DNA of 64,000 bases. Origin: Rhodosorus marinus CCMP1338 (lineage: Eukaryota; Plantae; Rhodophyta). Below the pieces are notes generated by a model. It was not told where the DNA came from. It saw only the letters and a program-made list of their open reading frames with translations, and did no database searches. Made by a program: the position numbers and the translations under genes. Shown here one piece after another: positions 2,033-54,644 of the stretch. Every line of letters begins with the position of its first letter. Position 1 is the stretch's first letter. Location: the NCBI GenBank assembly GCA_029953675.1, contig JAMWBK010000009.1:1550001-1614000 (forward strand). Direction: 5' to 3'.

Positions 2033-2600
2033 CGTCTCTCTGTCTAAATAATAAAACCGAACCCGATGCAAAGAACTGGAGGCTGAGTCACTTAGTCGAG
2101 AGGATCGAGCGTTCATCTACACATATATATAATCTGTTTTTAATTTTTTTTTTAACTACTACTCTTTCTGGTAGAGCCCCGTTTTTTTCTTTGAAGTCTC
2201 GCCCCATTCCTCATCTTTTGTTGACCACGGGGGTGTCTGTTTTTAGCTGCAGTGGAAAGAACTGGAATCGTTTTATAATTAAGTTTACAGTGGTTTTCTT
2301 GCTTTGATTGTTAAAGGCTTGGAGAAAGGCTGGGGAACAGGGTGTGCTCGTCATTGATGATGTAAAATAGATGGAAATGGGGAGGGAGCGGAGGGAAGCG
2401 GGAATGTGGACAGTCAAGCTATTTGGGAGTGTGGCGGGTTGATAGTTTGAAGTTTGGAATTGGTTTCTGGGTTTGGAAATTTGTTTTGAGGGGTGTGTGG
2501 GTCGGTTTTAGTAGGATCTAATTTGTTTTGGTACACTGGGACAGATCTGTTTGGTTTTTCTTCTTTTTTTTTGTTTGTGTTGTGTTTTCTTCTGATCGTA

Positions 2601-4329
2601 ATGGGTCAGTATCTGTCTACCCCGAGTACCGAGAAGCACTCAGAGGATGGGGCTGGGGGGATTATGGAGTATGGAGCCTCCGCGATGCAAGGGTGGAGGT
2701 TGAGCATGGAAGATGCTCATATATCTAATCCATCGGTGGCTGATGGAAGAGGGGTCTTCGCTGTGTTTGACGGTCATGGAGGCGCTGAAGTAGCCTTGTT
2801 TTGTGAAAAGCACTTGACCGAGGAATTGTTGAATTTAGCCGAGTACAAGGAGGAGCGTTTCGATGCCGCTCTGACCAGGGTGTTTCATAGGATGGATGAA
2901 ATGATTTTAAGCCCGACGTACGACAAGGAGTTGGAGAAACTAAAGAAGGAACGTCCTTACGGTGAAAAGAGGGTTCAGAACAATGACCCACCTGAAGGTA
3001 GTCGGCTTGTCCTCAAATATCAAATACTCCAGTTCGCGATTCTGCCTTTTTTAAGATTAGTGAGAGTAGCGAAAGAGGTTGTCGACGCTTCAATCTGCTC
3101 AGAATTTTCTCCTCTTGGTGACGCCCAGATCCACCAGAAGCAGACGCGGAGGAGAACGACTCGAGTCCTAAGAAGGCAGACTCTGACAAGGCTGAAAATT
3201 CAACAGGCGAGAACAACTCTGAGCAAGATGCGAGAGGAGAAGAGGCAAGAAACGTGCGGTTGCAACTTGAGGAGGGGATGCAGGCATATCTCCAAAACTT
3301 GCGGGATGCTAGGAGTAATGCACAGGCGAACAACAATGGACAGGGAACAATCATCCTGCCTTACGGGAGATCTGAGGATGATCAAAAAGCGGCTGAGTCG
3401 AAGTAAGCTTCAGCATCATCTCTAGGCTTCACTAACGGACAGTAATTTTTCCGGCTTCCCGGACAGTAATTTTTCCGGCTTCTCATCTTAGAGTCCCTCA
3501 AAATGTAATCGTGTTCCTCAGTAACGAAGGAGGTGGACAGAGCAACTTTCCACAAAATATTTCATTTTCGTATATGCTAGAGGAGCAGCAGTGCAACCTA
3601 CCTGATCACAAGATCACGGCCGGATGCACCGCTGTTGTCGCACTGGTGGTCGATAGGGAAATAATTGTCGCGAACGCTGGAGACTCGAAGGTAAGCTTGG
3701 CTCCCTAACGCGCGAATGGAGAAAGCACAACAAGAACCCCCCGTGCAAATTGAGAGGTTGGGAGTATAGGCTAGCTTGATTGCATGGAATCTCGCACCCC
3801 TGGAACCGACTCTTACAGGTTAAAAGTTGCTAAGTATTTCCTTCTCTGGATGCGCTCCGACTAGGCTGTCCTCTGCCGTGGGGGAAAGGCTATAGGGCTA
3901 TCCTTTGAGCACAAACCTTTCAACGACATAGAGAAGCGGCGAATCGAGGCGGCAGGGGGCTTCGTGTCTCCCGCAGGACGTGTAAATAATAACCTCAATT
4001 TATCCAGATCCATCGGTGACCTCAAATACAAAGGGAACAAGAGCATCCCTCCCAAGGACCAGATGATCACATCGGAGCCGGATATTTGCCGGGAAAAGAT
4101 TGAGCCGGAAGATGAGTTCATGGTCATTGCCTGCGACGGCGTATGGGATATAATGGAGAACCAGGAGTGTGTTGACTTTATTAGACAAAGAATTGGAGTG
4201 CCGGGGAAGAAACTTTCCGAAATCTGCGAGGAAATCTTCACTCTTTGCTTGGCGCAAGACCCAAAGTCGACGTCGGGATTGGGAGGCGACAACATGACCG
4301 CCGTGATCGTCCGCTTTAAGCACGAATAG
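2601..4329 (+). CDS. Protein phosphatase 2C (PPM1G/Ptc2-like) with acidic insertion, multi-exon
   Basis: MGQYLS myristoylation consensus; motifs MQGWRLSMEDAH, VFDGHGG, GCTAVV, NAGDS, RVNNNLNLSRSIGD, IACDGVWD, GGDNMT. Donors at 2998, about 3403 and about 3691. Exon structure of the central insertion is uncertain. Confidence 0.93.
3436..3482. repeat. 23-bp tandem duplication (period 24) inside the PP2C intronic region
   Basis: cggacagtaatttttccggcttc occurs at 3436 and 3460. Confidence 0.9.
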
Positions 4330-10322: not shown

Positions 10323-12333
10323 CTAACCTAGATCCCGTGAAACAACAGACCCTTGTGTGTCTCCTGAATACAGCATCGTTGCAGTTCGATTCCATCCTGT
10401 ACAGGTCAACTCTTCACTTGACAAAGACACCTGTTCTCTCCACTTCTTCGCGTCGTATACCTGCGACAGAGCAGTCATAATAAGAATACACGCGCGATCG
10501 CCGGTTCTCCTATTTGCAATGTAATGACATTGGTCGTAAATTCCAAACCGTACCTTCAATCCCCTAGATCCACAAAAGGCGACGAGAGTGCCGCTCGCGT
10601 CAAAGCTAGCATTCCGTACGCTCATATCTTCGTCGAACTCGACTCCCTTCGTCGACTTGAGCTTTCTCAAGTCCCATAACTGGGCTTTCCGCTTGCCGGC
10701 GACGCTGACCAGCGAATATCCATTCTCGGAAAGAGTGAGCGTAGACACGGGCCCTGCACACGAGTCCAATTCAGCACCGCTAGTCCTCCGCCCAGCAAAA
10801 TCCCCTTTTTGGACAGAGACGAATGATCCTTACCTGACTCTGTTTCAAAACTCGCGACACTGGTAAGCGAACGGACATCCCAGACGCGAACAATTCCGTT
10901 TTCCAAGCCAGAAGCGAAAATGGCTCCATCCGGGTGGAACTCCGCGCACAAGTTGCGAGATCCTGGAACACAACGGGACGAATACGATGTGAGTCCACAC
11001 ACGTCACGCGTTGCGAGTACATATGCAACTCACTGCTTACCATCAGGATCAACAACAGATGCTAGGGTCGTCACCGTCTCTATATCATGGACAGCCCATT
11101 TCCCATCCTTTGAACAAGTCGCAAAATAATCATCTGTCGGATGGATCGAGCACCCCGTGATGCCTGATAAAAGGGAATTAAACTCCTCAGTACACTCTGA
11201 GCCGAATCGCATGTTCTTCGCGCTATGGATTGCTGATACTTACCCATTGAATGATATTTGAAGGAGGCCTTTTGGCTAAATCCGCCCTCACCGTGGCGGG
11301 CGATGCTAGATTTCTGATCGGCTCCTGTCGATATCACAACATCTGCTGCAGAGCTCAGCGACAGTGCGGTGATTCCACCTTCATGTGCTTTGAACTGACT
11401 CTGAATCTCCGTGCACTGTTCGTTAAAAACTTTACAAGACCCATCCGAGCATCCAACGAAAACATAACCATGCGATGGGTTCTCCACTTTCATCGCCGTT
11501 CGCATCACCTCGACTGATACTCCTTCCACATGGTACTCTCGGGAGTCTTTTTCGCCGAGACCGGAGGATGCGCTCGGCTTCAACAGTCCCGAAATTGCAG
11601 GTCTCTTCATTCGCCACTTCTTCAGTGCGTCTGCTTTCTTCCCAATATTCTCTATCACCTCTTCGGACAACGACTTAGGTTCATCGGCGTCGGATTTTTC
11701 CACCTCCATAGCGTCCACTTCATTCACGTTAGAACCGCCGTTCATCTTGTTCACACTCCCGTCCTGCATGTACACACCCTTCTTGCGAAGCTCCATCAGT
11801 GCTTTTCTAGCCTCATCCCGCTCATCCGTTAGTCGAGCAATGACGCGAAGGGATGCGTCATAGTAGTATAAGGAATGCGAGAGTTCCAATCGCGTCGACT
11901 TCAAAGTCTGCTTGAGCTTGAAGGACTCCAACATTACCGAATCCCACTCATTTCGCAGCTGAGTGAGAGTTCCAGGAATCGAAGTGTTTGTGATCGGGGT
12001 TGGTTTGACACTAGAGCCGGACACCTTCACACTAATGAGATCCTCCTCTGTCAGATCCTCCCCAGTTTCCGGATCCTTCCCTCCTGTCGCAAGCAGATGC
12101 TGCAAAATGAGGCGCTTCTCATATACATGCCCAGATTTCCTGCTCACCACCGGTTCCTCCGGGGTAATTCCCGATACTGAAAGACGTAGCGATTGAACCG
12201 CACGTGAGATGCTTTGTCACTCAAGGTGTGACATCCATTGCCGACAATCGAAGAAAGTAGAAACAAGAAAGGAACAGAGCATCTAGGATCTGCAAAACAA
12301 GTAGGATGGTGGATACTTACTTGCGCAGAACAT
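10323..12333 (-). CDS. PRP19: Pre-mRNA-processing factor 19 (U-box + coiled coil + WD40)
   Basis: 13-nt first exon (12321-12333) spliced to 12176 gives [28 protein letters not shown] (U-box). TSIPGTLTQLRNEWDSVMLESF...RLELSHSLY is the Prp19 coiled coil. WD40 exons follow. Confidence 0.95.
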
Positions 12334-13307: not shown

Positions 13308-14199
13308 TGTTTGGGGAATAACGGGGAAGGGCGACTTCGAGGGATATGGATGAAAACGGGGTCCTACAAGAACGGTAAACGCCTTCCTCTCCCCCACCCC
13401 TCCCCCCACACATACACTTGTATGAGGATGTTCACCTAAGAAATAAAGGAGCTTTTTCCTTCCATCGCCCCCACGTTTTCTTCGGCTTTTCTCCACTCTC
13501 TCAAAACCAGCCATTCAATACCTTCCGATGGGGCTGAGAAAGACGCTCTGAAGCTTGCCATAATTTGATCATCTAGAGCACTTTTTGATCCACACATATT
13601 CTTGATTTGGAGAAATAACTCTAGATTAACTAGATATGATTATCCACTGGAAAAGCTACACTTGTCTTTACTAACTAATTAACTTGTACCACGTGTGTTT
13701 ATTGTCCAATGATAATACTATGGTTCGCGATGAGGTGGGAGTCTTTCAGGGTTTTTGAAGAGTTGGGAGCTGGGCGTTTGAAAGCTGAGGGTGGTGTTAG
13801 GGAGACATTGTTGATAAGCTTAATTTACTGGAGGTTAGTCAGAGACTCTTGTATTTCTGCAGGAAACTGAGGGTGAAGAGTAGAACAGAATCAGGATTCT
13901 TTTTTTGGTGATGGAGTGAAAGGCACTTCCGGGAGGATCAACCCTGGAGGCTTTTTTTTTTTTTTTGTTTATTGTTTGTTCGTCGCTGGTGTTGGGTTTA
14001 GGATTTGGTTTGGAGGGTCGGAGGATAGGTAGGGATGAGGTGCGGTAACATGCAACATTTCGTAATTATCTATATAAAGGATTTTGTAGATCTTTGAGCA
14101 GACGGTTGTTCCTGGATACTTGAGGTATGGCGGCATCGCTGATTACGATTTTGAACTAGTTTGGGTTGGGGGAGTTTTGAAGTTGTGTTATTGACAACA

Positions 14200-16277
14200 A
14201 TGGATCAGAGCGGGTCTAGGCAAGCTACGGGCAACTTCGGAAAGGGAGGAAGTTCTGGGCAGCCTGTCGGGAAGTTTGACAGAGAATCGTTGAGGGGAAT
14301 GCAGTGGGTCCTTCGCTGGCCCATAATATGCAGTGTTACCTTCTACTTTGGGTGTCTTCTAACCTTCTACTTCTTGGTTCGGGCGTTTGTCCTGGTTGCT
14401 GCAATCTCTTTTGACTTGTCTCGGGACCTAGCCTCTAGAACCCGGAGAGAGCTGAAGTTGAGATTGGAGAATGCTCGAACGTACGATGAATGGACAGAGG
14501 TCGCCAAGGAGCTGGACCGGTACATGGGTGCTCATGAATGGAAATCAGCCCCGGAATCGAGCCTGTATGATCATTTTACTGTGGAGAGCCTAATGGACCG
14601 GCTTGTGGTAGGAATTGGAAAGGCCCGGAGAGGTGAAGCCGGCTACGCAAGGGACATGACTGATACACTTCTGCGAGTATACAATTCAAACCTCAAGGGT
14701 TTGGGGATCGATAGTGAAGCCATTTATTCGGAGACGTACTACGGCACTAAGGACCTGATTGAAGAGTTCGTTGAGGTTATTGTTGAGGCTACGAAAGTTA
14801 TCCACGATGCACCAGAACAGGAACTCTCCGGCAAGAGCAAACTCGAGTTTTTCCTGCACGCAGAACGGTCATATGGCCGAATGGCAGTTTGCCTTTCGAG
14901 CGGGGCGATGATGGCAAATTACCACTTCGGCACGGTGAAGGGACTTGCCAGCCGTCACCTGTTACCGGAAGTTATCTCGGGAACAAGCGGAGGTACGTAG
15001 GCCGGAGAATCGAAGCGGCATTCATTCACGTCATGGTTGTTGAATGGGCTCTCTGGGCTATAACGTGACCTAGGTGCTTTTGTGGCTGCCTTTGTATGTA
15101 CAAGGAGCGATGAGGAGTTACAGGAGGCTCTCAACCCCAACCTGTGGCGTCTCGTAGACATGATGGATGGGCCACTTTGGAAAGGTCTTATTAGAGCAAT
15201 ATTCAAAGGTCACATGGTTCGAACAAGCCATGCGGCGAAGGCTCTCAGAGGTGTTTTCAGTGATATTACGTTCAAGGAAGCTCACGAGAGGACGGGCAGG
15301 ATACTGTGCATTACGGCAACAAGCAGTAAGAAGTTTGGGGATGCAATTCTTCTGAACTACATCACTGCACCTAACGTATGCCCGAAGATCCTTCCACCGA
15401 CGCATCGGATAGGTCTCTGATGTACCCTCTATGCTCACCGAAAACCTAGGTAACAGTATGGAGCGCAATTCTTGCCTCATCTGCGGTTCCACCAGTATTG
15501 GAGCCGATGCAATTGTATACAAAGAACCCGAAGACGAAGGAAGTTGAGCCGTTTCGGGACTTCGGGATCTGCTGGACTGACGGCGCTTTCCGGAAGGATG
15601 TTCCTCGGAAGCAGTTGTCAGAGACCTTCAATGTAAACTATTTGGTAGTTTCACAGGTAACCATTACCGGAGAATGCCCGCTTTTTTGTGTTTGTGGATC
15701 TTCTAGAATACGTCAATTCTGAAGAGCTTGATTCTCGGTTGGTTGGTGCTTGGTGTGGAAATTTGTAGATGAATCCGCACATTGTACCCTTCTTTTTCGA
15801 CTATCGTGGATCGAGCGGCAGTCCTCCCAAAAGGATACGAGGTAGCGGCTACCGAGGAGGTTTTATCCTCTCGTCGCTGGAGGCACTGCTGCGTTTGGAG
15901 ATGATCAAGATGCTTACTTTCATAGATCAATTTGATCTCCTGCCGGCGCTTTTCTCAGCTGATTTCTCCCGAGTTTTTCTCCAGGACTACTCAGGGGACG
16001 TAACTGTATACCCACGAAGAGGGTAAGCTGATCGTTCGAATTCGACCGCAAAGGGCGTTCATTTAAAGAGTGCTTTACGTATTCTCCGTGTTTCATGTGC
16101 AGACTTACCCTTCTGAACGATGTTTTCACAATACTGACTCCGCCGGACTACAAGAGGATGGAGAAGTACATCACCCTGGGGGAATCCTACTCATGGCCTA
16201 AGCTCCGACGAGTTCGGAACCATCTTATCCTCGAGAAGACTCTGAAGCAGTGTATATCTCAACTGTCAAAAGACTAA
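14200..16277 (+). CDS. Patatin-like triacylglycerol lipase (SDP1/TGL3-5 family), multi-exon
   Basis: N-terminal TM segment, DUF3336-like ARTYDEWTEVAKELD, GTSGG nucleophile, WTDG catalytic Asp, VVSQMNPHIVPF, GDVTVYP. Introns at about 14994, 15375, 15657 and 16023. Confidence 0.92.
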
Positions 16278-24021: not shown

Positions 24022-25989
24022 TACATACGGAGCGATCATGACAGCGATGGCGATGTGTCGCCTTTTCAGGGACATTTTTTATATGTCTATCAGAATCATC
24101 ATCACATATGGAAAGGGAGACCACACAAATCTAATGCCACACACAAGTCCCCAGTTTTAGTCCAACAAATTCGATGATCAGAACAACTTCTTAAGTCCGG
24201 AACTGATCGGAACGGTGAATGCCATTCCAATCAATTGGATCCAGTAGCCAGATTCTATGACGTACTGACACCATTACGGGTAAGTTGGGGTTGGAGGAAA
24301 CCATGTACAATGAATGTCTAATGGAGTTGTGTACTGAGGGCAGTTCCGATCGAGAAAATGCATCTGCGGATCAAATATCTATATGTCGAATGCGCAGGGA
24401 AATTGCGCATTGCGGCGATCAAAACGTAGGAATGAATTTTATGCTTATGCGCGGCAAGAAAGAGAAAGATTCCGTGACTTATTGTAATATCCCCGAAGCA
24501 AGGTTTTCGAGAACACATTACACGAGACCTCCGAACGTCGTGTCCTATCCAATGGCTGTTTCCGCGGATCACGATTTTTATCAGCGGGTCATGAGCCAGA
24601 CTGTAAAACGAAAGGAGGATCAGATAATTCGTGGCCATCTGATCATGTATCCTTGTCAACCATGAACTCTTATCGCTGTTGTTGATCAGAGAGGTTGAAG
24701 ATGTTTTCCAACCCAATGCAGTACCTTAGCTGAACAATTCACAAATCGCCTGAACGCTAGGTCAATGATTAAGTTTGTTGGGCCGGGATGCGGATAAACT
24801 GCTCCTCACCATCGAGAAATACCCCACCCTCATCAAAATACCATATACACACCCAGATTCTTTTTTCTGCGACACCTCCATATCAAAAAAGTCAAATTCA
24901 ACTGGTTGCTCGGCAGAAACCTAGGCTACGGAGTGGGCGTGAAAATTTTTTGCATGAAAAAGTGCTCATCTTGTTATGCAGGCTAGCTCATCCTCCTAAT
25001 TTGACGCGTCTGCTTTTCACTGCTTTCCAGCCCGGAAGAGTGGCTTAACAAATCTCTGATGAGGAACCTGCATAGGTCAGGGGAACGGAGGTAGTTTGCC
25101 GAGCTTGTGATAAGCACGATCGCTCACAATTTGTCCCTCTACCTTGAATCCAATTTGGTCGGGGCAAAGCACTGGAATCGAGAGACAAGATTGGAGATGG
25201 GAGTGTTATCTGTTGAACAGAGCAGAACTAACCCCATCAGCTACTGCAGAGACTGCTGTGCTCATCCACCGAGATCGATCGATACTCACGCAAGTATTCC
25301 ATACATGCGCGATTTGCGAACAATACGCATGTGGACATCATTCGCTCCCGTAGTTCAGCCAAGGAGAGTTTATCGTGATGACTTTGCAGAGTAACAACCA
25401 CACCGTTTAGGGCATCACTCGGTGACACTCCTCAACTGCGAACCAACATCAGCAGAGACCTTTTCAACCGGTGGCCTATTCAGACACTATTGACACTGAA
25501 AATAGTAAAATGGCTCATTTCACGATGTAGTGAAAATAGTTTCTCATAGTAACTTCATCCGCCTTGTCCAGTTTGTCAAAGGTGGGTCAAGTTCGTAGAC
25601 GTCGGAGAGGTTTTTCAGGAGGTGAGCGGTTGAACTTTTAACCGATGACCTCATTCAGACATCAATGAACACTCATAAATCATAAGAATCCTTCTCTCGC
25701 AAAGATTCTTCTTTACAAATCGACGGATTCCGTATTGAAACGAGTTCCTCCGCGGACATCCGGCCATCAACCTCCTCTTGTCGGTTTGGCGACGACGATC
25801 TCGTCCGTATTTGACGCACGCGTTAGTTCTTGATGAAGAGGGCGGGTTTGGAGTGGCCGGACGGGTTGGAGAACTGGCTTCTGTAGGAAATGAATTTCGT
25901 GCTCGCGTTTGAGTGAGAGGTCTTCCTTGCGTTGCTTTTGGCAACTTTCTTTAGCTTTCTTGTCCTCGCTTGGGGAGGCTGTGTGTATC

Positions 25990-28493
25990 ATGGGATGGGG
26001 TCCTGTTTCTCGAAATGGGCTTGCCAACTTTGGGTTTGTCTATAGTACGCTGCAAATTCAAAGGACTAGAAAGCTACAGGCAAGAATTCAGAGAAGAAGA
26101 GAGAAAATAACTATATTGCAGCAGGCTGAAAGAGATGGGGCTCAGATTGGTGAGGATGAAGTTAGTGCGTATGGGATGCGTACGTTGAAAGCGTTGCGGA
26201 AAGGAGGTGTGACCGCTAGTGATGCTGTTAGAGATGTCAGGGAAAGAATTGATGAATTGGATCCAGTTTTCTTTAATACACTCACGAAGGTACTCATAAG
26301 AGAGCAGCGGTATCCTGAGGCTAAATCACTTCACGTTGTTCGAATGTCGAACCCAGATTTGTATGCTTTCCGTTCGTCCAAAGTACTTCTCGATCTATCG
26401 GCTCGAAAAATGGATGTACTTTTCGCGAAGAAGGTGGCAAGAGACATCATTGATCATGAACAATTCAAGACGTCAACTAGTAAGCAGTCGCTGAATGAAT
26501 TGAAGCCATCTCCTCACCGAAATGCTCTCTCTAACACCCCTTTGCCTGCCTCGACTGTTCGTTCGCCTCTCATAGTCTCGGCTAGAGATCATTTGGACGT
26601 CACCGCCGCTATGGCCCTTACATATCAGGTGTGCCAATAGTCCCAAATTTTCTATCTCTCTTCTTTGCAAAAGGCTAACCGCCTATGGTTTGACTTTTCC
26701 ATTTGCCAAATAACTTGGTAGAGGAGACCAACTTTATCGTTTCTTAAAAGTCTTGAGAAAAGGATGCTTAGGGAGCGCAAACCTGTAGATAAAGCGTTCT
26801 CCAAAATGAGGGTAAGACCACTGAGCTAGAACTGGAGAAGCTGGCTCTTGTGAACACTGTTCTGAGCGCGAGGTTTGACAACCTGTTGATTTGAATTTTT
26901 GTGTTTGCATTGTTCCGTCCTGTTTTAGGAGGAATCCAAGGGCTTGGAGACGATTGGCGTTGAGTTTGAGCACTCCGATGACTTTTCCGAGGAGGACGAG
27001 GAAGTGACAACGTACATGAACCCTTTTGGGAGAACTGACCTTGTTCAGGAAGACGAGGAGTTTGTCGACGCCAAGGTCAAGTATTCAGTGGAGAGCTATG
27101 ATGATACAGTGGAAGAGAAGAAGGAGACAAATGCTTTGGTTGCGTTGGAACAGGGCCCTTTGAGATTCGGAGAAATGATATCTTCAGCAATGTTGGTACG
27201 TACGATCGACCACTTCCAACATCAAAACGTTTGGGTGAACTTAGACTTCCATGCATTGCACGTGATAGAACGAGGACGAAGTACGCTCGGTGAAGTTGCA
27301 GAGAAGAGAGGAAGTAGTCGAGATGTGTAAGGAAGCGCGGGAGTATATGAAATGGTCCGACTCGAAGAAGCGCACATCTCGAACAGAAGAAAAGCAAGGT
27401 GTAGATTTCTTGCGGCCCTACAACAATCTTATGGCAGCCCTAAGCAAGACGGGGATGACCGAGGCAGTCTTTAAGACTCTGGATTTAATGAAGCTCGCGG
27501 ACATTCCCCCCAACACGTTCACCTACGAGGCCGTCGGGAACGCCGTTATAAAGTCCGTCAGATTTTTGAAGGTAACCGTTTTCTCTTTCTTCCCGCTGCA
27601 ATGAATGAGAACTGCACTGTTCGATGCTCACAAGGCATTCTGATTGATCAACTCGTGTTTTAGTCTGCGGTCGACATGCAAACTCTTCCCCCCCGGTTAA
27701 TAGAAGCGGCATTTGTCGGACGGTCCAATGTTGGCAAGTCTTCGCTTATCAACATGCTTTGTGGAAAGAAACGACTGGCGCTGACCTCGAACACACCCGG
27801 AAAAACAAAAATGTTCAACTATTTTATCGCAAACGACCAAAAGGAGGCTCACGGTGCGCCGTCAGTGTTGCTACCCAGTGGCACACGCTCTTTGATGTGG
27901 CGACATATCTGCTCACAACCAGGTGCTGCATTTCGCTCTTGGTTGATATCTAGGGAGAAGGTTCTACTTGGTGGACTTGCCGGGAGTCGGCTTTGCCAGA
28001 GTTGATTCTAAAACGAAAGACCACTGGACTCAATTTACTACTGACTACTTCTGGGAGAGGCAAAGCCTGAAAATAGTTTTCCACCTAATCGATTCGAAGA
28101 TAGGCATACAAAAGCACGACCTGGAACTAATGGACCTCGTGAAGGAGACCGATATTGAGGAAAAGTAAGTGTATCTTCGATCACAGTGCGTAGGCCAAGA
28201 AATTGCTCCAAATCTGAATCAATACCGTCACCCCATTTGCGTTGCCACTCAGGTACTGCGTCGTGCTCACCAAGGTGGACAAACTGGGGAATAAACGTGT
28301 ACATAGCCAGATTATTGATGGAGTTCTTGATGCCTTGGAAGAAAAAGCACTGCCGCTCACTACGAATATCATACCGACTAGCTCAGAGTACAAGATCGGT
28401 CGCGACCATATCTGGAAACATATGTATAGACTTATGTTGTCCAAAAGGTCAACTTGGATGGAGGGTGCCGCGGACGAGCTGGATGTAGCGTAA
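25990..28493 (+). CDS. Pentatricopeptide-repeat / EngB(YihA)-type GTPase fusion, about 614 aa, 8 exons, probably organelle-targeted
   Basis: Exons 25990-26479, 26576-26628, 26722-26811, 26929-27195, 27269-27571, 27664-27853, 27954-28164 and 28253-28493 sum to 1845 nt in frame. PPR motif [35 protein letters not shown]. GTPase motifs [18 protein letters not shown] and TKVD. Confidence 0.85.
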
Positions 28494-28599
28494 AGAATCG
28501 CTATTTCCGTCGCATTTGAGCCGCGCGCTTCATGCTGTGCGGCGGCGACTGCGCTCCTCAGGAGGAGGATTTCAGACCATGCGCTATACATCTGTCGGT

Positions 28600-29140
28600 A
28601 CTGCATTCTGGCTTCTGTTAATAAGAAAAAATTGCACGGACATGCTTTCCTGATAGTTTTCAGCACGGCTAGAACCCCCTCATGCCGTGCTTGCACACTA
28701 TCTCACCACAACCTCCCAAGCCGAGAATTCTCTTCCAGCTTGTGGAGCCTTTACATCTCTTTCGCATGAAGTGGACGCATAGAACCGTTGTACCAAAACT
28801 TTGCCACCAAAATAAGAAAGGACTGAAGGGCTGGGCGTTCGACCCAAAGGTCCAGCGAAATTAGCTGGTACTCTCAAGCGGCTCAACAGCTTGAATGGCG
28901 TACCTGGATTCCGTTCACAAGTGCTCCGCTCACGTTTGACATACGCTTGCCATCCCGATGAGAAGATCCAAGTCGTTTAAAGCGCTGTTTACTGACATTC
29001 GGATCATATTTAGGAAACCAGTAGTGTACAAGAGCCATGACAGTAAGCTGAAAACTTCGGCACGGCATCGATTGAGTAAGCTCGTGTTGACCTGGTAGAA
29101 CGTGCAGGCAAGTCCGGTGGGATCGAGGTTTCCGCAGTCA
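28600..29140 (-). CDS. Possible small spliced hypothetical gene
   Basis: GT/AG-flanked minus-strand exon LTVMALVHYWFPKYDPNV...VNGIQ followed by PFSPFLFWWQSF...; start and stop not established. Confidence 0.3.
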
Positions 29141-29314
29141 TGATCGCCGTCCTCTCATTGCTTGTGGCAAAGATGTTCGAGTGTCGCTGAACAGGTAAGA
29201 AGGGAGGTGGGAGCTTTGCTGAAGTAGCATCTTCAGGTCTATGTGGGACCTGAGGATAGTCGCTGGTGTGTTGTTAGTCTCAGGTAGTTGTTGGTTGTGG
29301 ATAGATTTATAGGA

Positions 29315-30485
29315 ATGGCTATGACACCAGGAACGAGAATGTTGGGCTTGTCCGCTGCTCGGTACGCGGTTGGTATTTCGAGCAGAGGGCTAAGCAGTGG
29401 GACGACAGGAGGGAAAGGAGGATGGCTTGCAAGATCCTCCCCTTATGCTCGACTGATGCGGCTGGATAAGCCGATCGGTTCTACGCTTCTTTTCCTGCCT
29501 GCTGCTTGGGCTATAGTTATGGCCTCACCGTCACTAACAGAAGCGGTTCCTACGCTAGCACTGTTTGCGAGCGGCTCGGTGCTCCTCCGAGGCGCTGGAT
29601 GTACGATCAACGACTATTGGGACAGAGATATTGATAAACAGGTCAAAAGAACAGCCACAAGGCCAATCGCAGCCGGAGAAGTTAGCCCTCGTAATGCTCT
29701 CTTATTTTTCTCAGCTCAGTGCCTCGCTGGGCTTCCAATTCTCCTCTCTATGAACGCCACGACCATCTACCTCGGCGTCTTCTCGCTAGTCCCTGTGGTA
29801 AGCTAGATATGGAATATACTAAGTCAATATCTGTTCATAAGCAGTTATAATCTAGAATAATTTCTCATTTTATTTCTGGAATATAATTTTTTGGTCTTAA
29901 ATTATGAAGGTACTGTACCCTTTAGCAAAGAGGGTAATGCCATGGCCTCAGATCGCACTTGGCGTGTGCTTCAACTTCGGAGCGCTGATGGGCTGGACGG
30001 CAGTAACGAATCAGCTTGAGTTACCTGCTGTTCTTCTTTATCTCGGATGTTTCTGTTGGACGCAAGTTTATGATACGATCTACGCCCATGCGGATAAGGC
30101 TGATGACATATCTGTCAACATTGGATCGAGCGCTCTTGTCTTAAAGGATGGAACGAAAAAGGCCCTGACGGGCTTCTCCTTGATGAGCTACGGTCTAGTG
30201 GGCATGGCAGGCATATCTACAGGCCTTCCACCGCTGTTTTTCGTGTTTTTGGCCCCATCACAGATTGACTTGCTCAACCGAATTCAGCGGACTGATCTGG
30301 ATAATCCGGAGTCTTGCATCGCTAGTTTCCAGGCTAGTCGAAACACTGGATTTCTTGTACTCCTTGCGATCATAATTGCAAAGCAGATACTGCAGAGAGA
30401 AGCTAAAGCTGAAGCTGAAGAAAAGGAGGCCGAAGAGGCCGAGGAGACTATGGAGCAAGACTCAAACCGCATCGGATCGTGGTAA
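29315..30485 (+). CDS. COQ2: 4-hydroxybenzoate polyprenyltransferase (UbiA family), mitochondrial, 2 exons
   Basis: YARLMRLDKPIG, RGAGCTINDYWDRDIDKQVKRTATRP, YPLAKR, YDTIYAHADKADD; R/S-rich presequence; intron about 29797-29909. Confidence 0.95.
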
Positions 30486-30810: not shown

Positions 30811-33623
30811 TTAGTACACCCTCTTTCCCGGTGGAACTGTCTCCATTTCTTTCGGGTCTAGGGTCTGGCTATTCACTGGTCTGTATGCAATCTTCACTGT
30901 TTTGTCGTTGTCGAGGCGCTTATTATACCGAGAAACCCAGGAGATTGTGTGCTTCATCCAGTTATTGTCATCTCTCTCGGGGAAGTCATCCCTTGAATGC
31001 GCACCACGCGACTCAGTCCGATTGTGTGCAGAATGCATCGTCTGCACAGCATTTATTAAAAGGTTTTCAACCGTCAACGCATCCAGCAGGTCCAGGTTCC
31101 AAACGAGCGTTCGATCGATCACCCTCAAATCCTGATGCGCGCAAGAGAAAATTTGGCAGCATAAGAGAAGCTTAGCCCAGAGCTATGAGAAGAAACTGAG
31201 CGCATTGTGCACTTGGGTCAATCAGAGCGAGGTCCATCTCACCTCAAGCATGTCGTAGACCTCATCTATCTTCTTGACACCCTCTTTCAGAAGCGAGTCT
31301 TCTCGGAATACTCCGCAGTGCTGCTGCATGCACTTCTGCATCCGGACTCTGATGTCCGCAACCTTGGTCGATCCCTTCTTCCAGCGCATTGTATCAAAAT
31401 TCTCCAGCGCAAACTGGCCAGCATCAGGTTTCAGCGGCTTCTGCTTTTGCCCAGGCTTGTACTTCTCGCTGGCGAAAATCGGCGCCGCTCGGCCAAATAC
31501 GACGATATCCAAAAGCGAGTTCGCTCCGAGTCGGTTAGCTCCTGCATTTTCGGGAAAACAACAAAGCAGAATATTTCAGGAACAGGTCAACTACCGCATT
31601 AGTGTCCTAGCCAACAACTGTTTCGGGGACTTCGGAGGGTTCGCAATGTCTTGATCTATCCAGTGCAGCGGAAAACCAAGGAGCAAACTAACCATGTACA
31701 GAAGCGCAAGCAGCTTCGCCAGCGGCCATCAACCCTGGAACAACCGTGCTGTGTCCGTTCTCGTCAAGCGTCAAAACTTCTCCCTTGTAGTTCGTAGGGA
31801 TCCCACCCATATTGTAGTGGACCGTTGGCAGAACCGGAACGGCCTGCTTGGTCATGTCCACGCGGGCGAAGACCTTCGCAGTTTCCATGATCGATGGGAG
31901 CCTCTCCTTCAACAGACTCGGAGGGAGGTGGTCCAGGTGGAGGTGGATGTGATCCTTATCGGGTCCGCAACCTCGACCTTGCAGTATCTCCATTTGCATC
32001 GCCCTTGACACTACGTCCCTGCTGGCCAGGTCCTGACCAGTGCATTGAAAAGGAAAGAGAAGGTCAGCGAACAGGCACATATTTCATTTCCATGCTTTTG
32101 CCGACAATAACGGGGTTGGGTTTGCATCGGGATATCTTACCTTTGCTGATGGTGCGTAACGTTCCATGAACCTTTCCCCGTTTCGGTTTTTCAGAAAGCC
32201 TCCTTCACCCCTCGCACCCTCTGTAATCAAGCAACCGGCGCCGTAGATACCGGTCGGATGGAACTGGACAAACTCAAGGTCTTCCAATGGCAAGCCTGCT
32301 CTCGAAACCATAGCATTCCCATCGCCTGTGCAGCTGTGGGCAGAAGTCGCTGAGAAGTATGCCCGTCCATATCCACCAGTTGCAATAACAGTCACGTTCG
32401 CGCGGAACCTGTGGAACGTCCCGTCCTCAAGACAAAGCGCAACGCATCCACGACATTCCCCATCCTCCATGATCAAGTCGACCACGAAGTACTCTATAAA
32501 GAAAGTCGCCTGGGCATTGACCGCTGTTTTATAGAGAGTATGCAATATGGCATGTCCGGTCCGATCGGCTGCGGCAGCACATCTATGTGCCTGACCTCCT
32601 TTCCCTAATTTCCACCGAAGAAAAGACAATTGGATTTCCTGGTTTAAGTCATCACAGGTTCAATCCGTTTTCCGCAAACCCAGATCTTCGCGTTGCTGGC
32701 TGATCTTACCAAACTCTAGGGATTGTCCTCCAAACGCTCTTTGGTAGATCTTCCCGTCTTCAGTTCGAGAGAAAGGTACACCATAAGCTTCCAGTTCTTT
32801 CACGGCGTTAGGAGCTTCTTTGCACATGTAGTGAATAGCGTCCTGGTCTCCAAGCCAATCGCTCCCTTTCACTGTATCATACATATGCCATCTCCAGTCG
32901 TCTTTCTCCATGTTACCCAATGCGGCATTGATGCCTCCCTACAACAAGGAGAAAACGAGTGGAAGAGTGAGGAGCGCTCCAGTCCAGACTTCTCAGTTGT
33001 CCAAGGAAAGACTCAAGAGTTCATGGGGACAGAGGAACGAGCGGAGATCATACCTGAGCCGCAACGGTATGCGATCTCGTAGGGAATAACTTTGATATAC
33101 ACGCGACTTCGTACCCAGCTTCAGCGAATCCGATCGATGCTCGAAGACCTGCACCACCACCTCCAATAACGAGGGCTAGAGGAAGGACCGAAAATCCAAT
33201 TCGGAAGTTGGTTGTGTAAAAGTAAGTTCTTGCAGGGGGAGGGTGCTACATTTCTGAATTGAGATTTTGGTTCGTTACCATCGAAAGTGTGATCGAGCAT
33301 CGGGTAGGCCCTCACCTTGGGCTTCGGTAGATCCAGAAGATCATCTGAAGTTGGGAAGGAAACAGCGTACAAAATCTCTTCATTTTAGGTCACTGGCAGC
33401 ATTCAGGCAAGTTACAATTCGCAAAGGAGTAAACTAAGCAGCCTCTCTAACTCCAATTATTCAAATAGTAACCCCCAAAACACAGCCAAAACAACTGAAA
33501 ATGAACAGATCACTTACGGATGTCCTGCAGAGTCTTGGGCTGCTCAAACTCTTTGGACAGTCCAACCGCCGACGAACGCAGTCCACGGCTTCCAAAAATA
33601 CTTGAGAATCCTCTCCTATACAT
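30811..33623 (-). CDS. SDH1: Succinate dehydrogenase flavoprotein subunit, multi-exon
   Basis: Presequence [13 protein letters not shown]; GGGGAGLRA; RSHTVAAQ|GGINAAL (FAD-His); [34 protein letters not shown]; C-terminal RVY. Confidence 0.98.
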
Positions 33624-34001
33624 CACTGTCCTCAACATTTCTGCAAAATCACATGAACTTCAAAACAAAAAAGCCCCCCTCACCTCACCCACCCCACCCC
33701 AAAAGCTTCAGATAATTCACAAAACCTAACTAAAACAGGACTCTATTAATGAGATACCTTAGTTCCTTAAAATCATGTCCAAATCTTTCATCCTTACTCA
33801 ATGATTCATCCCCAACCTCCCCCACCCCACTCTCCATCGAACTCTACTCCTTGCAACCCTTCCCCGTTTCTCCAAATTATTTTTGGATACCGACCGATGT
33901 CCACTACCCATTAATTTTTCTTGAAAATATTAATTTCGATATGTCAATTGATGAAAATGGCGTCAAAAAAAGAGGATTTGAAAAAAGAATATTTTTGATC
34001 G

Positions 34002-38929: not shown

Positions 38930-41611
38930 ATGGAGACAGAAGACTTCAAGCTTGCTCCAGCTATGGATGCAGGCGAGGATGCATCGGAGGTCAAAGGCGA
39001 TGATATTGTAACAGAGTTTGAACGATTTGATCTTCCGCTTCTGGAGGTACGTAGCTTAACTTTGGTTTCCTGCAGATGTTTTTGGATTATTTCGAAGTCT
39101 CCATTTACTTTGCTGGTTTCTGTTGTCAAAGTCTATCTGGGTTTTGGATATCTGAGCTGTTTGTCGTTCTTCTCGACTGCATGGGTGTATAGATGGTGAG
39201 ATCTGAGCATCTATCGAATGACATTAAGAATGGAAGCTATGTGAGGTACCATAGGCATTGTTCTAACAAACTAAGGCGTCTGAGAAAGAACTTGAAGTTG
39301 GCACATGGCCGTGGGAAAACTTTTCAGAAGAAGCCTTTGACCGTGGAGCTAGCGCAGAAGGACCCTCGGCATCTTGTCCTTCTACTTTTCAGCGCAGAGC
39401 GGGCATGGAGCAATGCCATGGTTATTAAGGAAGACCGCAGGAGAAGGAGATACATTGGGCGTCGCTTCATGAAGGCTGCAAAGCTTGCGGAGCGACTAGC
39501 CGAGTTCTCGCGTGAACTAGGAGAAGACAAGACAACGCTGGAGGCCGATGCGTACTCATCATGGATGTCTGCTATATCGCTTCTTGAGCGTGAGCGGTTG
39601 GAGGAGTCCTTGGAGAGCTTCAAGAAGGCGCAACTTCTGTTTGAGGGTATGAAAAGCTTCCCTCGCGTCTACCTCGTCAGCAACTCACGATTTCCCTACT
39701 ACCCAGGTTTGGCGACCGCGTTCGGAGCTCAGAGTACGCTCTATAGGGAACGTTTGGAGGAACTTGAACCGTCAATCGCGTTCTGTCGGTACAGCATTGC
39801 TCGGCAGAAGGGTGAGGATCCTACGTCAATGATGAATGCAGCCTCACCTAGGTACAGAAAGATCAGCTCAGTCGATCCCCCTGAAACAGTACTCAAGTCC
39901 CATTGCACCTTGTTCTAAGCAAAACGTGTTTGTTGAATAATCCCGAACTTTGAGAGCAGGGTGGATAACTTGGTTGCAGCAAAAATCGACGCAGCTCTGT
40001 CGGAATCGCGAAAAGTGCAAGCCGAGAGCTTTGGATCCGTGGATTGGTGCGGCAGGAATATTCCTATTAGGACTGAAAAGGTAAACAGAGAGCACGCTGA
40101 GTGTTTTCTAGCGCAATGCCCGCGAGCTGATCATAAAGGGTACGTCTTGCTTCGTTGGATGCTATTCGAAACAGGTTGGAGAAGGAATACTGCTCGCGCG
40201 TGAGGCTGTTCATACAATGGAACAAGAATCTGACTTTGACAAGAAGGCGGCGCTGTACGACAAAATATTCATTGCGTACAACGATGTTTCTCGAACCGTA
40301 GGGCAAATTCTCCAGCTGCTTCCGTTGGACTTTTTTGGTCTCTAAGAGCGAATATGAGTTGCGCTCTTCACCCTGTTCCCAGGTTTCGAAGCAGAGATCG
40401 GAAATCACTGCTGCTGCGGAAAAAGAAACGCTTTCTCAAATCGCCGAGCAACACCTGCAAGAGCTGGATCTGATCTCACAGTACATCAAACACTCTCGAT
40501 TGAGGTACTAGAACATACTCGCCTCGAATTTCCTTCGCTTGTATTCCGCGACCAACGCACGCTTTGTTGTATCTTCGAACTACGTCAGGCAAACTATTGC
40601 ACGAAACTTGCTTCTTGTTGAGAAACACATTGAAGCGAACTCCAAACCCGACGACTTGGTGAGGCTATATGAGAACCTTCGACAGAATTGTCAAGAGATA
40701 CTGGACCTCGATGGGATTCTGTCAGATCCAAAATCTCGAGATATGACGCAAGCAGAGATCCGAAAGTTCGAAGCAAGTCGATGTTTTTGGCTCGCGAAGA
40801 GCTACAAGAGCCAGCACCGGTGGTCGGAGTCAATTCTGCTCTTTAAGCGAGCGGAGGTGCTTCTGAACGATGCTTATGCTGAGGGCGAGTCAGTCGGTGA
40901 TCCGAAGAAATCGGATTTGGCTGAGATGGTCAAGGAATCGATCAGGTTGAGAGCCATGGCCCACGCACAGGTGAGCCTTGTGGACGACGAGCCGGTTCCA
41001 ATCACGCCGTTCATTCTGCTTGTCTCTGCTCTTTACTAGCGACGCACTTGCCCTGCTCAAATTGCATAGGGAGTTTTGGAGAATCTCAAGCTGGACAAGA
41101 GCTTCAAGGAAGGAATGCAACTGACAGAAACTGGAAGAAAGAGGACAGTGCTATCTGGAGATGAAAGGTTTGAAAGCGTCATTAGGGTATGTCAAAGTCC
41201 CATAAGATGTTAGCCGGTTTTTCTTCCTCCTCTCTGTGGAGGACAAAAATTAAGGCACTTGGCTTGGAGGCATCCACCTGACGATCATTCCGCTCATGTC
41301 GTGATTAGGTGATTTCCGATAAGGATATAGCAGGAACGATTTGCGAGATGCCTCCGTCGCTCACATCTACGCCATGCAAACCGGTCGCGTTCGATATTGC
41401 AGTCGATGGGGTACTACAAGCACGATGATAGTTTGGACATTCTTTCTTCGGTTTTGGTTGCTTACGTTCCTATGTTGGTCGCTACTCACTTTTCTAGGTG
41501 ACGGTCTCGGACGTGAAAGGTGTGGTCAAGTATCTTTCCGAAACAGATGGAAACGATGGAAGCGCGCCAAAGCGTGAGGGCACCGGATTCTCCAGATGGT
41601 TTCGTGGATAG
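38930..41611 (+). CDS. SRP68: Signal recognition particle subunit 68, multi-exon
   Basis: NGSYVRYHRHCSNKLRRLRK, LFSAERAWSNAM, LYRERLEELEPSIAFCRY, C-terminal PCKPVAFDIA; canonical GT-AG joins. Confidence 0.93.
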
Positions 41612-52784: not shown

Positions 52785-54644
52785 CTAGCTCTCTAATGCC
52801 TTTCTGAGCGCATCATTCTTTCTGATCAGATCGTCCACAGCATCTTTCAACTCGGCGTTGCACTGTTCAAGCTTTTCCATCTTCGCCTTCGCGGCCGTAC
52901 GAGACTTCAATGCAGCCTCACGATTTCGGACTACCTTGGGTTTTGCGTCGTTCGAGGCCATCGTTCGGCTTCGATCGTAACCTGCTGGCTCCTGACTCAG
53001 TGAACTCCGCTTTAGACCCGGGATTGCAGCCTTGCCTACAGGCGCTTGATATGGAGCCCAGGGAAGCATGTTAACCGGCGGGACCGCCATCCCGTTGGCT
53101 GGTATCCCCATCAGTGGTGCTACAGGCACCATTGGTGCTACAAGAACACTCTGGGGCGCAACATTTGAAACCGCAGGTGCAGCTTGATTCATGCCCGCAA
53201 GTGCAGCTTGACTCATGCCCGGAAGTGCAGCTTGATTCATGCCCGGAGGCGCAGCTTGATTCATGCCCGGTGGTGCAGCTTGATTAACGCCCGCATGTGC
53301 AGCGTGATCTACACCCGCAGGAGCTGGTTGATGAATCGCTGATGGAGCGGGCGGGGTTATCATCGTGGGTGTTATCACTGGTGGCGTCACTGTTGTGGGT
53401 GCTGAGACTAGCGTCGGAGTCCTTGTGGTTACCATCGACGGTGCCGCCGCGGATGCGATAGTCGGCGAGCGACCAGCGGGCATGCGGAGACCTACGCCGT
53501 TCGACGAATCGAGCGTAGGTCTCAATGTGCGGACTTCCGATGGTACGCAGGAGTTGGGACCGGTTGGCAGAGCCGAATACCCAATGTGGTCAGATGCACC
53601 ACTCCTGGGCAGGTCGACCTGCTCCCCCAGGCCCTGCTCCCGAATAGACATAGCTTCCGTCTTCTGGCGGTTCCCACTCGCTTCCCTTGTCGGCAGACCC
53701 GTTGAATGAACCTCTTGGTGGTTTCCTGCATCCATGCTCAAGTCCCCTTCATCGGGCAAGTCCTTCATGGCACTGCCACTCCCTCCATCCCCAGAAAGGG
53801 GCATGACTCGGCTACCATGTTTTTCCTCACCAGCAGCTGCCCTGTAGTCATTGATCGTTTCCGAAGTCACTTTTGATGGTATTCCGGATAGTGGCTGTGG
53901 TAAACCAGCGAGCACGGATTCCGCACTACTCCGCTTCTGTCTGCTTAACGCGTGTATACCCGGAGGGGACAGCAGGTCTCTTTGCTCATCACCTCCTATT
54001 TGTGAGTCTGACCCTCTCTGCCACGGCAGTTGACTCATCTCCCACTCTCCATCACGGATACGTTGATGGTTTCTGGATTCTGGAGGTCTAAGTGGAGTCA
54101 GCAAAGGCTCCAGTAATCTCCGATTTTTCAAGGCAGACAAATCGTTGAGTAGTGGACTGTACAGGTTGCTGTCATTCTTGAGTGGATCATCCAAAGAGTC
54201 AACCGTCATCACTGGCTCGAGATGCGAGCTCTGTCTCGGCCGTTTGAGGGGCAATGCCCTCTCAGTAGGTGTAGGGATATTTGACATTCGTTTACGACTG
54301 TCCGGTGTGAGCTGCGGGAGCGGAAAATCACTGTGCTTGCTGTAGCTTGGACTGAGGCCCACGAATCTAGAGAGAAAGGAGGTAGGCGTCCCAGCAGAAA
54401 GGGGAGTTCTGTTGAACGCTGACGGGGAAAACATTCTTAACGACGCGCTCAAGTCATCTCCCCCACGCTCGAGTGGTACCGTGATCTAAAGAAAGTACAA
54501 GTAATCAGGAACCAACATTATTTTGAGAGCGAACAGCGTTAGACGTATCGCCATCAATCCTACCTTGTCCCCAGATGACTTCCTCAGGCCAGCTTTGGGG
54601 GGAGGCAGTTTCCCCAAAGGCAGGGGTTGCAGCTCTTTTCGCAT
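52785..54644 (-). CDS. bZIP transcription factor with long disordered N-terminus, 2 exons
   Basis: C-terminal NREAALKSR (N-x7-R) plus heptads LEQCNAEL KDAVDDL IRKNDAL; first exon MRKELQPLP...GDK|GT spliced to ITVPLERGG. Confidence 0.85.
53179..53336 (-). repeat. 24-bp coding minisatellite, about 6.5 copies, encoding (AAPPGMNQ)-like octapeptides
   Basis: gcagcttgattcatgcccg units at 53179, 53203, 53227, 53251, 53275 and 53299, with a degenerate copy at 53323. Confidence 0.92.

Follow-up and report, generated by a model that had tools for sequence, protein, structure and literature searches.

GTPases of the EngB/YihA/YsxC type act in bacteria on late pre-50S particles (as described for YsxC/YihA), and consist there of about 195–220 amino acids with nothing ahead of the GTPase (G) domain. 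Related proteins are imported into organelles where ribosomes are of bacterial type: human GTPBP8 is needed for maturation of the mitoribosomal large subunit (PMC11229512, PMC10654211), Mrx8 of yeast attaches to mitoribosomes and assists the translation of Cox1 (PMC8693954), and the nuclear-encoded, organelle-targeted proteins of Arabidopsis, EngB1 (At2g22870, EMB2001), EngB2 (At5g11480) and EngB3 (At5g58370), are chloroplast and/or mitochondrial (PMC4263083). The trypanosomatid mt-EngB proteins (6YXY chain EQ, 471 residues; 7AM2 chain BV, 787 residues) combine an EngB-type G domain with lineage-specific extensions and are found on the precursor of the large subunit. Here we describe a gene of the red alga Rhodosorus marinus, located within a 64-kb window (the whole stretch of nuclear DNA analysed), that joins a complete EngB domain directly to a module of pentatricopeptide repeats (PPRs).

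PPR proteins of the P class, such as maize PPR10, PAP2/pTAC2, the rPPRs, LRPPRC and PTCD3/mS39, act on organellar RNA or ribosomes and carry the same 35-residue helix-turn-helix unit that we find in the Rhodosorus protein. Their repeats form long tandem arrays of roughly 5–30 units, whereas the PPR-EngB proteins have 1.5–2 recognisable repeats fused to an enzyme domain. In PRORP (PPR plus NYN nuclease), PPR-SMR and PPR-DYW deaminase proteins, the PPR tract likewise lies N-terminal to a catalytic domain acting on organellar RNA; in the present protein a GTPase switch takes the place of the nuclease or deaminase. Where bacterial EngB begins with its G domain, the spliced nuclear gene of Rhodosorus encodes ~395 extra N-terminal residues, in which a presequence and a helical region are followed by an acidic, disordered stretch and 1.5 PPR, and this PPR-bearing extension sets the protein apart from all characterised EngB proteins, be they bacterial, Arabidopsis, human, yeast or trypanosomatid. 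The plant EngB proteins that we found (about 360 residues) show only the GTPase domain in Pfam, without PPR, and for GTPBP8 and Mrx8 a PPR module is not reported in the papers cited above, nor were these two proteins retrieved in our homology searches.

The window has ~47% G+C and short GT-AG introns. A three-frame translation of 25900–28600 gives a gene of eight exons (25990–28493), whose join encodes 614 amino acids and equals, letter for letter, P0001 (hypothetical protein NDN08_006938, Rhodosorus marinus); the seven introns, each GT..AG, measure 73–117 nucleotides, and the ATG at 25990 is the first in-frame ATG downstream of in-frame stops. An earlier reading of this DNA from its letters alone (below, the sequence-only reading) had proposed exactly this in-frame join of eight exons with GT-AG introns only, and had named splicing across 27571/27664 as the test of a single mRNA. 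The transcript evidence consists of peptides from assemblies (MMETSP0011; JGI contigs of 1.5–2.4 kb) of a second R. marinus strain, in a 90%-identity cluster. Two full-length transcript-derived proteins, P0312 (616 residues) and P0316 (626 residues including a translated 5' leader), are 92% identical to the window protein and colinear with it end to end, apart from a single-residue indel at position 3. It follows that splicing proceeds as modelled at each of the seven junctions, 27571/27664 and the optional intron 1 among them, and that PPR and EngB are encoded by one expressed gene and one mRNA, in a family in which this arrangement is conserved. A seven-exon, 646-residue model differs only by keeping intron 1, which is removed in the transcripts.

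Some assembled transcripts of the second strain (P0314 and P0317) end just past the PPR exon, as they might if the gene model had misjoined a neighbouring PPR gene and an EngB gene. These two, however, are plain cases of intron-5 retention: they run into the intron, reading VTVSSFLRLQ from it, and then meet a stop, ending ...VRFVKVTVSSFLRLQ. Moreover, spliced full-length transcripts exist, the EngB domain starts 5' of intron 5, the same fusion is found as continuous open reading frames (ORFs) on transcript-sized contigs from many taxa, and the PPR signal is significant in three libraries; we regard a misjoined gene, or a chance PPR-like helix pair, as extremely improbable and already effectively refuted. 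Other second-strain assemblies run into intron 6 (P0315, P0318) or end at the TAA that opens intron 7 (P0311). Retention of intron 5, 6 or 7 gives a truncated protein in each case, that of intron 5 being a predicted 412-residue PPR-only protein without the GTPase; these forms may be unspliced pre-mRNA or a regulated isoform.

The C-terminal half of the protein is a complete EngB/YihA/YsxC domain. It matches the YsxC/YihA model TIGR03598 with 170.4 bits (cut-off 124.45) over model positions 2–185 of 186, and MMR_HSR1 with E 4e-20. In the translation, the G1 (GRSNVGKS), switch-I (PGKT), G3 (DLPG) and G4 (TKVD) motifs are all intact, and the nucleotide-binding motifs are invariant or nearly so across 116 family members. 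With the bacterial proteins (B. subtilis YsxC, E. coli YihA, T. maritima EngB; 1SVI, 1PUI, 3PQC) it shares the whole G domain with G1–G4, at 28–36% identity, as well as the family-specific N-terminal strand xVxFxxSAxxxxxLP before the P-loop, and its closest sequences in the PDB are EngB proteins at E ~1e-28 (3PQC, 1.3e-28). An AlphaFold2 model computed from the 116-sequence alignment (mean predicted local distance difference test score, pLDDT, 72; >85 for residues 348–600) contains the predicted EngB fold including the additional N-terminal strand (residues 397–403). Foldseek aligns this model to T. maritima EngB and B. subtilis YsxC with target-normalised template modelling (TM) scores of 0.86–0.90 and root-mean-square deviations of 2.0–2.6 Å over ~204 columns (3PQC_A, 0.90 and 2.0 Å; YsxC, 0.87–0.90). 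It also matches chain 6yxy_EQ of a T. brucei mitoribosome assembly intermediate; trypanosomatid mt-EngB is a structure as well as a sequence match, at ~17% identity, whereas the extension of 7AM2_BV is C-terminal (G domain at residues 77–232 of 787) and shows no PPR relationship that we could see.

The EngB model match begins at SVRFLK, which is encoded at the 3' end of the PPR exon. Intron 5 therefore cuts the first EngB strand and does not part the two modules, contrary to the sequence-only reading, which had placed this 92-nucleotide intron between them; its position inside the strand is a further argument against a chimeric gene model.

The PPR assignment rests on several scores. Pfam PPR_2 matches residues 351–388 with 32.5 bits (cut-off 30; E 9e-8) and NCBIfam TIGR00756 scores 25.4 bits (cut-off 20), while PF01535 and PF13812 stay under their cut-offs; with PPR_2, TIGR00756 and TIGR03598 above threshold, a textbook 35-residue PPR next to a complete EngB G domain stands as first read. 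A phmmer search of the PDB matches designer PPR proteins at residues 340–398 (E 2.5e-9), and a hidden Markov model (HMM) of the family's repeat matches the Rhodosorus PPR with an independent E-value (i-E) of 3.8e-9. In the AlphaFold2 model, the predicted PPR helices (348–361 and 364–376), followed by a helix at 383–393, have a pLDDT of about 90 and enter the first strand of the G domain without a linker; the half-repeat region corresponds to a conserved block, ETxEFLANAxV, in the family. Beyond this one full repeat and a half, Pfam, hhalign and the repeat HMM detect no further PPR in the Rhodosorus protein, where the HMM, built as a single repeat from the family's last PPR, finds only that repeat in each protein and is unable to count upstream ones. 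The structure model, which had been suggested as a way of counting repeats, gives the helix pair of this repeat and one further helix directly ahead of EngB.

The PPR module recurs well outside Rhodosorus. A first homology search returned brown-algal and metagenome or transcriptome proteins of 460–680 residues that align over the G domain and ~75 residues before it, and the exon-5/6 junction falls within this family-conserved block. We then searched a profile of the pre-GTPase region plus G domain against 1.84 billion representative proteins (50%-identity clusters), obtaining 3,974 proteins at E<=1e-30, most of which are ordinary EngB. The best 150 of these are almost all long (most 450–790 residues), and in ~130 of them the match starts no later than profile position 65, inside the PPR repeat or ahead of it; a Met start with at least 150 residues ahead of the P-loop is present in 110 of 147 members. 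We note in passing that the top representative of this search, P0056 (756 residues), has seven tandem copies of the first ~55 EngB residues, which are either an assembly artefact or an odd exon amplification.

The pre-GTPase segment was also profiled by itself, over the 108 residues immediately ahead of the G domain in 35 members. When this profile was run against the complete set of PDB sequences, all matches with E<0.1 were to solenoid proteins of the PPR or PPR-like kind, led by designer PPRs (dPPR; 7e-70 summed) and PPR10 (6e-46) and including PAP2/pTAC2, plant mitoribosomal rPPRs, LRPPRC, PTCD3/mS39, KRIPPs and CCM1. Single two-repeat stretches of designer PPRs reach i-E values of 1e-5 to 3e-8, and profile positions 19–94 align onto two consecutive PPR repeats. 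Individually, 26 of the 35 members match PPR_2 at E<0.1, and among eleven full-length proteins scanned only those of Rhodosorus and Ectocarpus exceed the Pfam threshold; because the PPR part is sub-threshold in Pfam, precomputed annotation shows the GTPase domain only for nearly all members, and the proteins sit in databases as 'EngB-type G domain-containing protein' or 'hypothetical protein'. By member and cluster names, the family includes red algae of three classes (Rhodosorus marinus, Timspurckia oligopyrenoides, Cyanidium caldarium), a cryptophyte (Hemiselmis), brown algae (Ascophyllum, Scytosiphon, Ectocarpus), other ochrophytes (Chrysoparadoxa, the pelagophyte Aureoumbra and a diatom of the Bacillariaceae) and dinoflagellates (Durinskia, Durusdinium, Symbiodinium). 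Judged by this distribution, the fusion is old, being present in three red-algal classes, cryptophytes, ochrophytes and dinoflagellates, and red-lineage evolution, across which it is conserved, spans about a billion years. In a search of the literature outside subscription journals we found no PPR-EngB or PPR-GTPase fusion described. The suggestion in the sequence-only reading that the architecture is uncharacterised thus holds as far as published description goes, but it is widespread, occurring in ~130 of the best 150 clusters.

The G domain places the protein among eukaryotic EngB proteins of one type. When the large family alignment is used as query, the matches after ~40 family members are mostly bacterial YihA, with Bacteroidota/Rhodothermales as the nearest bacteria, and At2g22870-like plant proteins are among the search matches. 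This pattern fits membership of the Rhodosorus protein in the eukaryotic 'type 1', Bacteroidota-like EngB branch, corresponding to the type 1, Bacteroides-like plant EngB of Suwastika et al., who relate the Arabidopsis type-1 branch to Bacteroidetes and place animal EngB in a cluster separate from the plant type (PMC4263083). In a neighbour-joining (NJ) tree of 199 columns (116 family members, 9 plant-type EngB and 40 short sequences from the family-alignment search), 126 sequences, comprising all eukaryote sequences and one of the 40 short ones, split from the remaining 39 in 96 of 100 bootstraps, so that plant-type EngB and Rhodosorus lie in one eukaryote clade apart from Bacteroidota, with weak grouping between the two.

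Within the family, the tree contains a dinoflagellate clade (support 100) and at least three apparent ochrophyte paralogue clades (62–92). At least two of the ochrophyte-like subclades show starts with a signal peptide and Phe, and from these N-termini ochrophyte-type algae may keep more than one plastid-directed PPR-EngB paralogue. The 100%-supported dinoflagellate-type clade (P0005, P0066, P0076, P0079, P0081, P0088, P0092, P0097, P0100) has an additional conserved N-terminal block, KWTPKRE.W.G.VTDD…FG.L.PGHEVEV, ahead of the helical repeats, and its junction motif is VWDLP.APEE in place of AVSM.TLP.

Ahead of the PPR, the AlphaFold2 model shows two long helices (residues 270–336) and, further upstream, helices at residues 57–155 of moderate confidence (pLDDT 55–77); the alignment of the N-terminal region is essentially Rhodosorus-only, and the structure model is low-confidence there. 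Between them lies the acidic linker already visible to the sequence-only reading, at residues 217–268, which is predicted to be disordered (pLDDT <50). The second, degenerate PPR that this reading had placed at residues 93–110 was not recovered: Pfam gives no PPR match in residues 1–221 even with the E-value limit relaxed to 10, and an hhalign comparison with the family's PPR profile yields only a 15-residue match of 4% probability. Used alone as a search query, the N-terminal extensions returned 2 matches, which were uninformative, the list probably having been swamped by low-complexity words.

The destination of the protein must be judged largely from its relatives. The Rhodosorus N-terminus (MGWGPVS...NFGFVYS) is basic and partly helical and so, as proposed earlier, compatible with a transit peptide, but equally with a mitochondrial presequence. 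The orthologues from Cyanidium (MAFVRSL) and Timspurckia (MTSAFVSIS) both have an early Phe, and an N-terminal Phe motif is needed for plastid import in the red lineage and in glaucophytes (PMC2222254). Many complex-algal members have a signal peptide followed by Phe or Trp (MLASA|F, SRLA|F, SVS|F, GDA|F, GLA|F), and a signal peptide with F/W/Y is the ASAFAP-type signal of complex red plastids (PMC4329603). By a crude scan, a hydrophobic h-region start is present in 53 of 116 members (26 in shuffled N-termini) and a small-x-small|F/W/Y site in 20 of 116 (4 in shuffles). EngB, YihA, YsxC and PPR were not found in the supplements of the ASAFind paper. Because of the early Phe of the red-algal orthologues and the enrichment of signal peptide plus Phe in complex algae, we lean towards the plastid rather than the mitochondrion as the probable compartment in Rhodosorus.

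A protein of the mitochondrion or of both organelles, with a part in building the large mitoribosomal subunit like that of GTPBP8, Mrx8 and Arabidopsis EngB2, is a less probable reading that nonetheless deserves weight. The Rhodosorus N-terminus is Arg-rich, with no acidic residue before E38 and a predicted helix; Arabidopsis EngB2 is mitochondrial and EngB1 dual-targeted, and the one EngB gene listed for C. merolae would have to supply every organelle in need of EngB (PMC4263083); and many of the PPR matches of the family profile are mitoribosomal rPPRs. However, the red-algal orthologues start with MAFV and MTSAFVS, the signal peptide plus Phe of many complex-algal members routes proteins to the plastid (PMC4329603), and the neighbouring mitochondrial SDHA and COQ2 proteins have Ser/Arg-rich starts of a different style.

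We consider it probable, on balance, that the protein is an organelle-targeted GTPase for assembly of the large ribosomal subunit, plastid and docking steps included. Once the protein is imported, with the plastid as the likeliest destination, its G domain in the GTP state would bind a late pre-50S particle and dissociate from it on hydrolysis, like bacterial YsxC and mitochondrial GTPBP8. With their rigid attachment, the PPR hairpins would add a further surface at which a stretch of organellar rRNA or a ribosomal protein could dock, and the acidic stretch may chaperone basic ribosomal proteins. Taken separately, the ribosome-assembly role is likely by analogy with characterised relatives, and a service of the PPR as a docking module is about evenly balanced. 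Several points weigh against the account as a whole. Our literature search found no experimental study of any PPR-EngB member. Only one full PPR repeat is detectable in the Rhodosorus protein, and with this single repeat and the N/H variation at its position 5 (N in the window strain, YNNL; H in the second strain, YHNL; position 35 is N in both), the PPR–RNA contact is only putative and a protein–protein module is possible. The Rhodosorus start is without a clean AFVP-type motif, its Arg-rich predicted helix resembling a mitochondrial presequence; the signal-peptide scan is crude; type-1 EngB2 of Arabidopsis is mitochondrial, with EngB1 dual-targeted (PMC4263083). Finally, the backbone of the NJ tree is not settled within the eukaryote group (Rhodosorus with the plant-type group in only 19 of 100 bootstraps), the tree is without cyanobacterial or alphaproteobacterial EngB, and complex algae hold several paralogous clades, possibly serving different compartments.

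The sequence-only reading had gone further, to an RNA-guided organellar ribosome-assembly GTPase, in which the PPR tract would read a defined organellar RNA through the PPR code and steer the GTPase to one site. An organellar assembly GTPase remains the best inference, but guidance by sequence-specific RNA binding is unsupported by 1.5 repeats with a variable position 5. In favour of a guide, N5 and N35 of the canonical repeat are residues of the code type, 104 of 115 family members have D, N or S at position 35, and the model joins the PPR repeat rigidly to the G domain. Yet a D at position 35 also belongs to the general structure of PPR motifs, and no more than 52 of 116 members have N at position 5. 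With 1.5–2 recognisable repeats (one full and a half in Rhodosorus, two by the family profile) and one base read per repeat, specificity would therefore amount to at most one or two nucleotides. We thus hold a sequence-specific guide to be improbable, and a long one unlikely.

Two further readings concern what the GTPase would act on. The protein could be mainly a translation factor for particular organellar mRNAs, not an assembly factor, and be tethered by its PPR to the transcript or to a translational activator. In favour of this, yeast Mrx8, of the EngB/YihA family, associates with mitoribosomes, and Cox1 translation also needs the PPR protein Pet309 (PMC8693954). But Mrx8 and Pet309 are not interchangeable, and no direct link between them is shown; what is known of bacterial YsxC and human GTPBP8 speaks for a role in building the large subunit (PMC11229512, PMC10654211); and the Rhodosorus gene lies on the plant-type, Bacteroidota-like branch, outside which fungal, protist and animal EngB fall (Suwastika et al., PMC4263083). 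We give this reading little credence beside assembly of the large subunit. Equally speculative is a GTP-gated RNA-binding device, in which the nucleotide state would, through the linker-less junction, switch the PPR on or off a specific organellar RNA such as an rRNA helix or mRNA leader. A checkpoint role of this kind is hinted at in trans by yeast Mrx8 together with the PPR activator Pet309, and we think it a doubtful prospect. If true, RNA binding by a PPR protein would for the first time be seen under the control of a GTPase switch, and the family would form a red-lineage-specific checkpoint of plastid ribosome production or translation.

The coordinates of the gene and its parts are collected below.

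Features of the PPR-EngB gene, in window coordinates (aa, residues of the 614-residue protein)
Feature	Position	Strand	Remarks
Exon 1	25990..26479	+	aa 1–163: ATG, basic presequence-like aa 1–~50, helical aa 57–160 of no assigned fold; equals P0001
Intron 1	26480..26575	+	96 nucleotides, GTAAGC..TCATAG, in frame, stop-free; removed in transcripts (FKTSTISARDH)
Exon 2	26576..26628	+	from the exon table
Exon 3	26722..26811	+	from the exon table
Exon 4	26929..27195	+	acidic, predicted-disordered linker, aa 217–268, about 26944–27099
Exon 5	27269..27571	+	aa 301–401: long helix, PPR module, first six EngB residues SVRFLK (27554–27571)
Canonical P-type PPR motif	27410..27514	+	aa 348–382; position 5 = N, position 35 = N; Pfam, NCBIfam, AlphaFold, family repeat HMM
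Half PPR repeat	27515..27553	+	aa 383–395; one helix, leading straight into the EngB strand
EngB/YihA/YsxC GTPase domain	27554..28424	+	aa 396–592; end of exon 5 and exons 6–8; TIGR03598
Intron 5	27572..27663	+	92 nucleotides, GTAACC..TTTTAG; within first EngB strand; if retained, stop after 15 codons
Exon 6	27664..27853	+	from the exon table
G1 GRSNVGKS	27718–27741	+	from the translation
Intron 6	27854..27953	+	retained in some transcript assemblies of the second R. marinus strain
Exon 7	27954..28164	+	from the exon table
G3 DLPG	27974–27985	+	from the translation
Intron 7	28165..28252	+	retained in some transcript assemblies of the second R. marinus strain; begins with TAA
Exon 8	28253..28493	+	stop codon TAA at 28491–28493
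G4 TKVD	28269–28280	+	from the translation

Elsewhere in the window, a gene for Mg-chelatase subunit H, a plastid enzyme, lies on the minus strand at 17328–~21240 (CobN/Mg-chelatase, 1063 bits), and its upstream in-frame segment starts as a textbook red-lineage plastid transit peptide, giving a yardstick within the window. The immediate downstream neighbours of the PPR-EngB gene, both recognized by eye from the translation, are a UbiA/COQ2-like prenyltransferase (29288–30485, plus strand; NDYWDRDIDK motif; start MAMTPGTRMLGLSAARY) and the succinate dehydrogenase flavoprotein SDHA (30811–33659, minus strand), which are of mitochondrial type with Ser/Arg-rich, presequence-like starts. Long ORF segments at 2493–3425 (plus), 11080–12150 (minus), 14161–15000 (plus) and 39193–39918 (plus) match PP2C, Prp19, DUF3336 and SRP68. 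A tandem repeat at 53171–53332 (24-nucleotide and 72-nucleotide units, 5.8 and 2.2 copies, 78–87% matches) falls in a minus-strand ORF at 52785–54452, whose C-terminus matches bZIP domains and in which the repeat would encode an in-frame peptide repeat. No tRNA gene or Rfam family reached threshold anywhere in the 64-kb window, and the tRNA, Rfam and tandem-repeat scans gave nothing bearing on the PPR-EngB gene.

The PPR-EngB architecture is real, conserved and unstudied, and is neither unique to the Rhodosorus genome nor mechanistically surprising for organellar biology. EngB is among the least understood of the universal ribosome-assembly GTPases, plastid ribosome biogenesis beyond green plants is almost unexplored, and the algal groups with red plastids carry out much of marine primary production. 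Routine annotation misses the architecture; with a family profile, hundreds of 'GTP-binding proteins' would receive a new annotation. In Rosetta-stone fashion, the fusion ties PPR proteins to EngB-type GTPases, a connection that is testable in tractable algae such as Phaeodactylum and Cyanidioschyzon.

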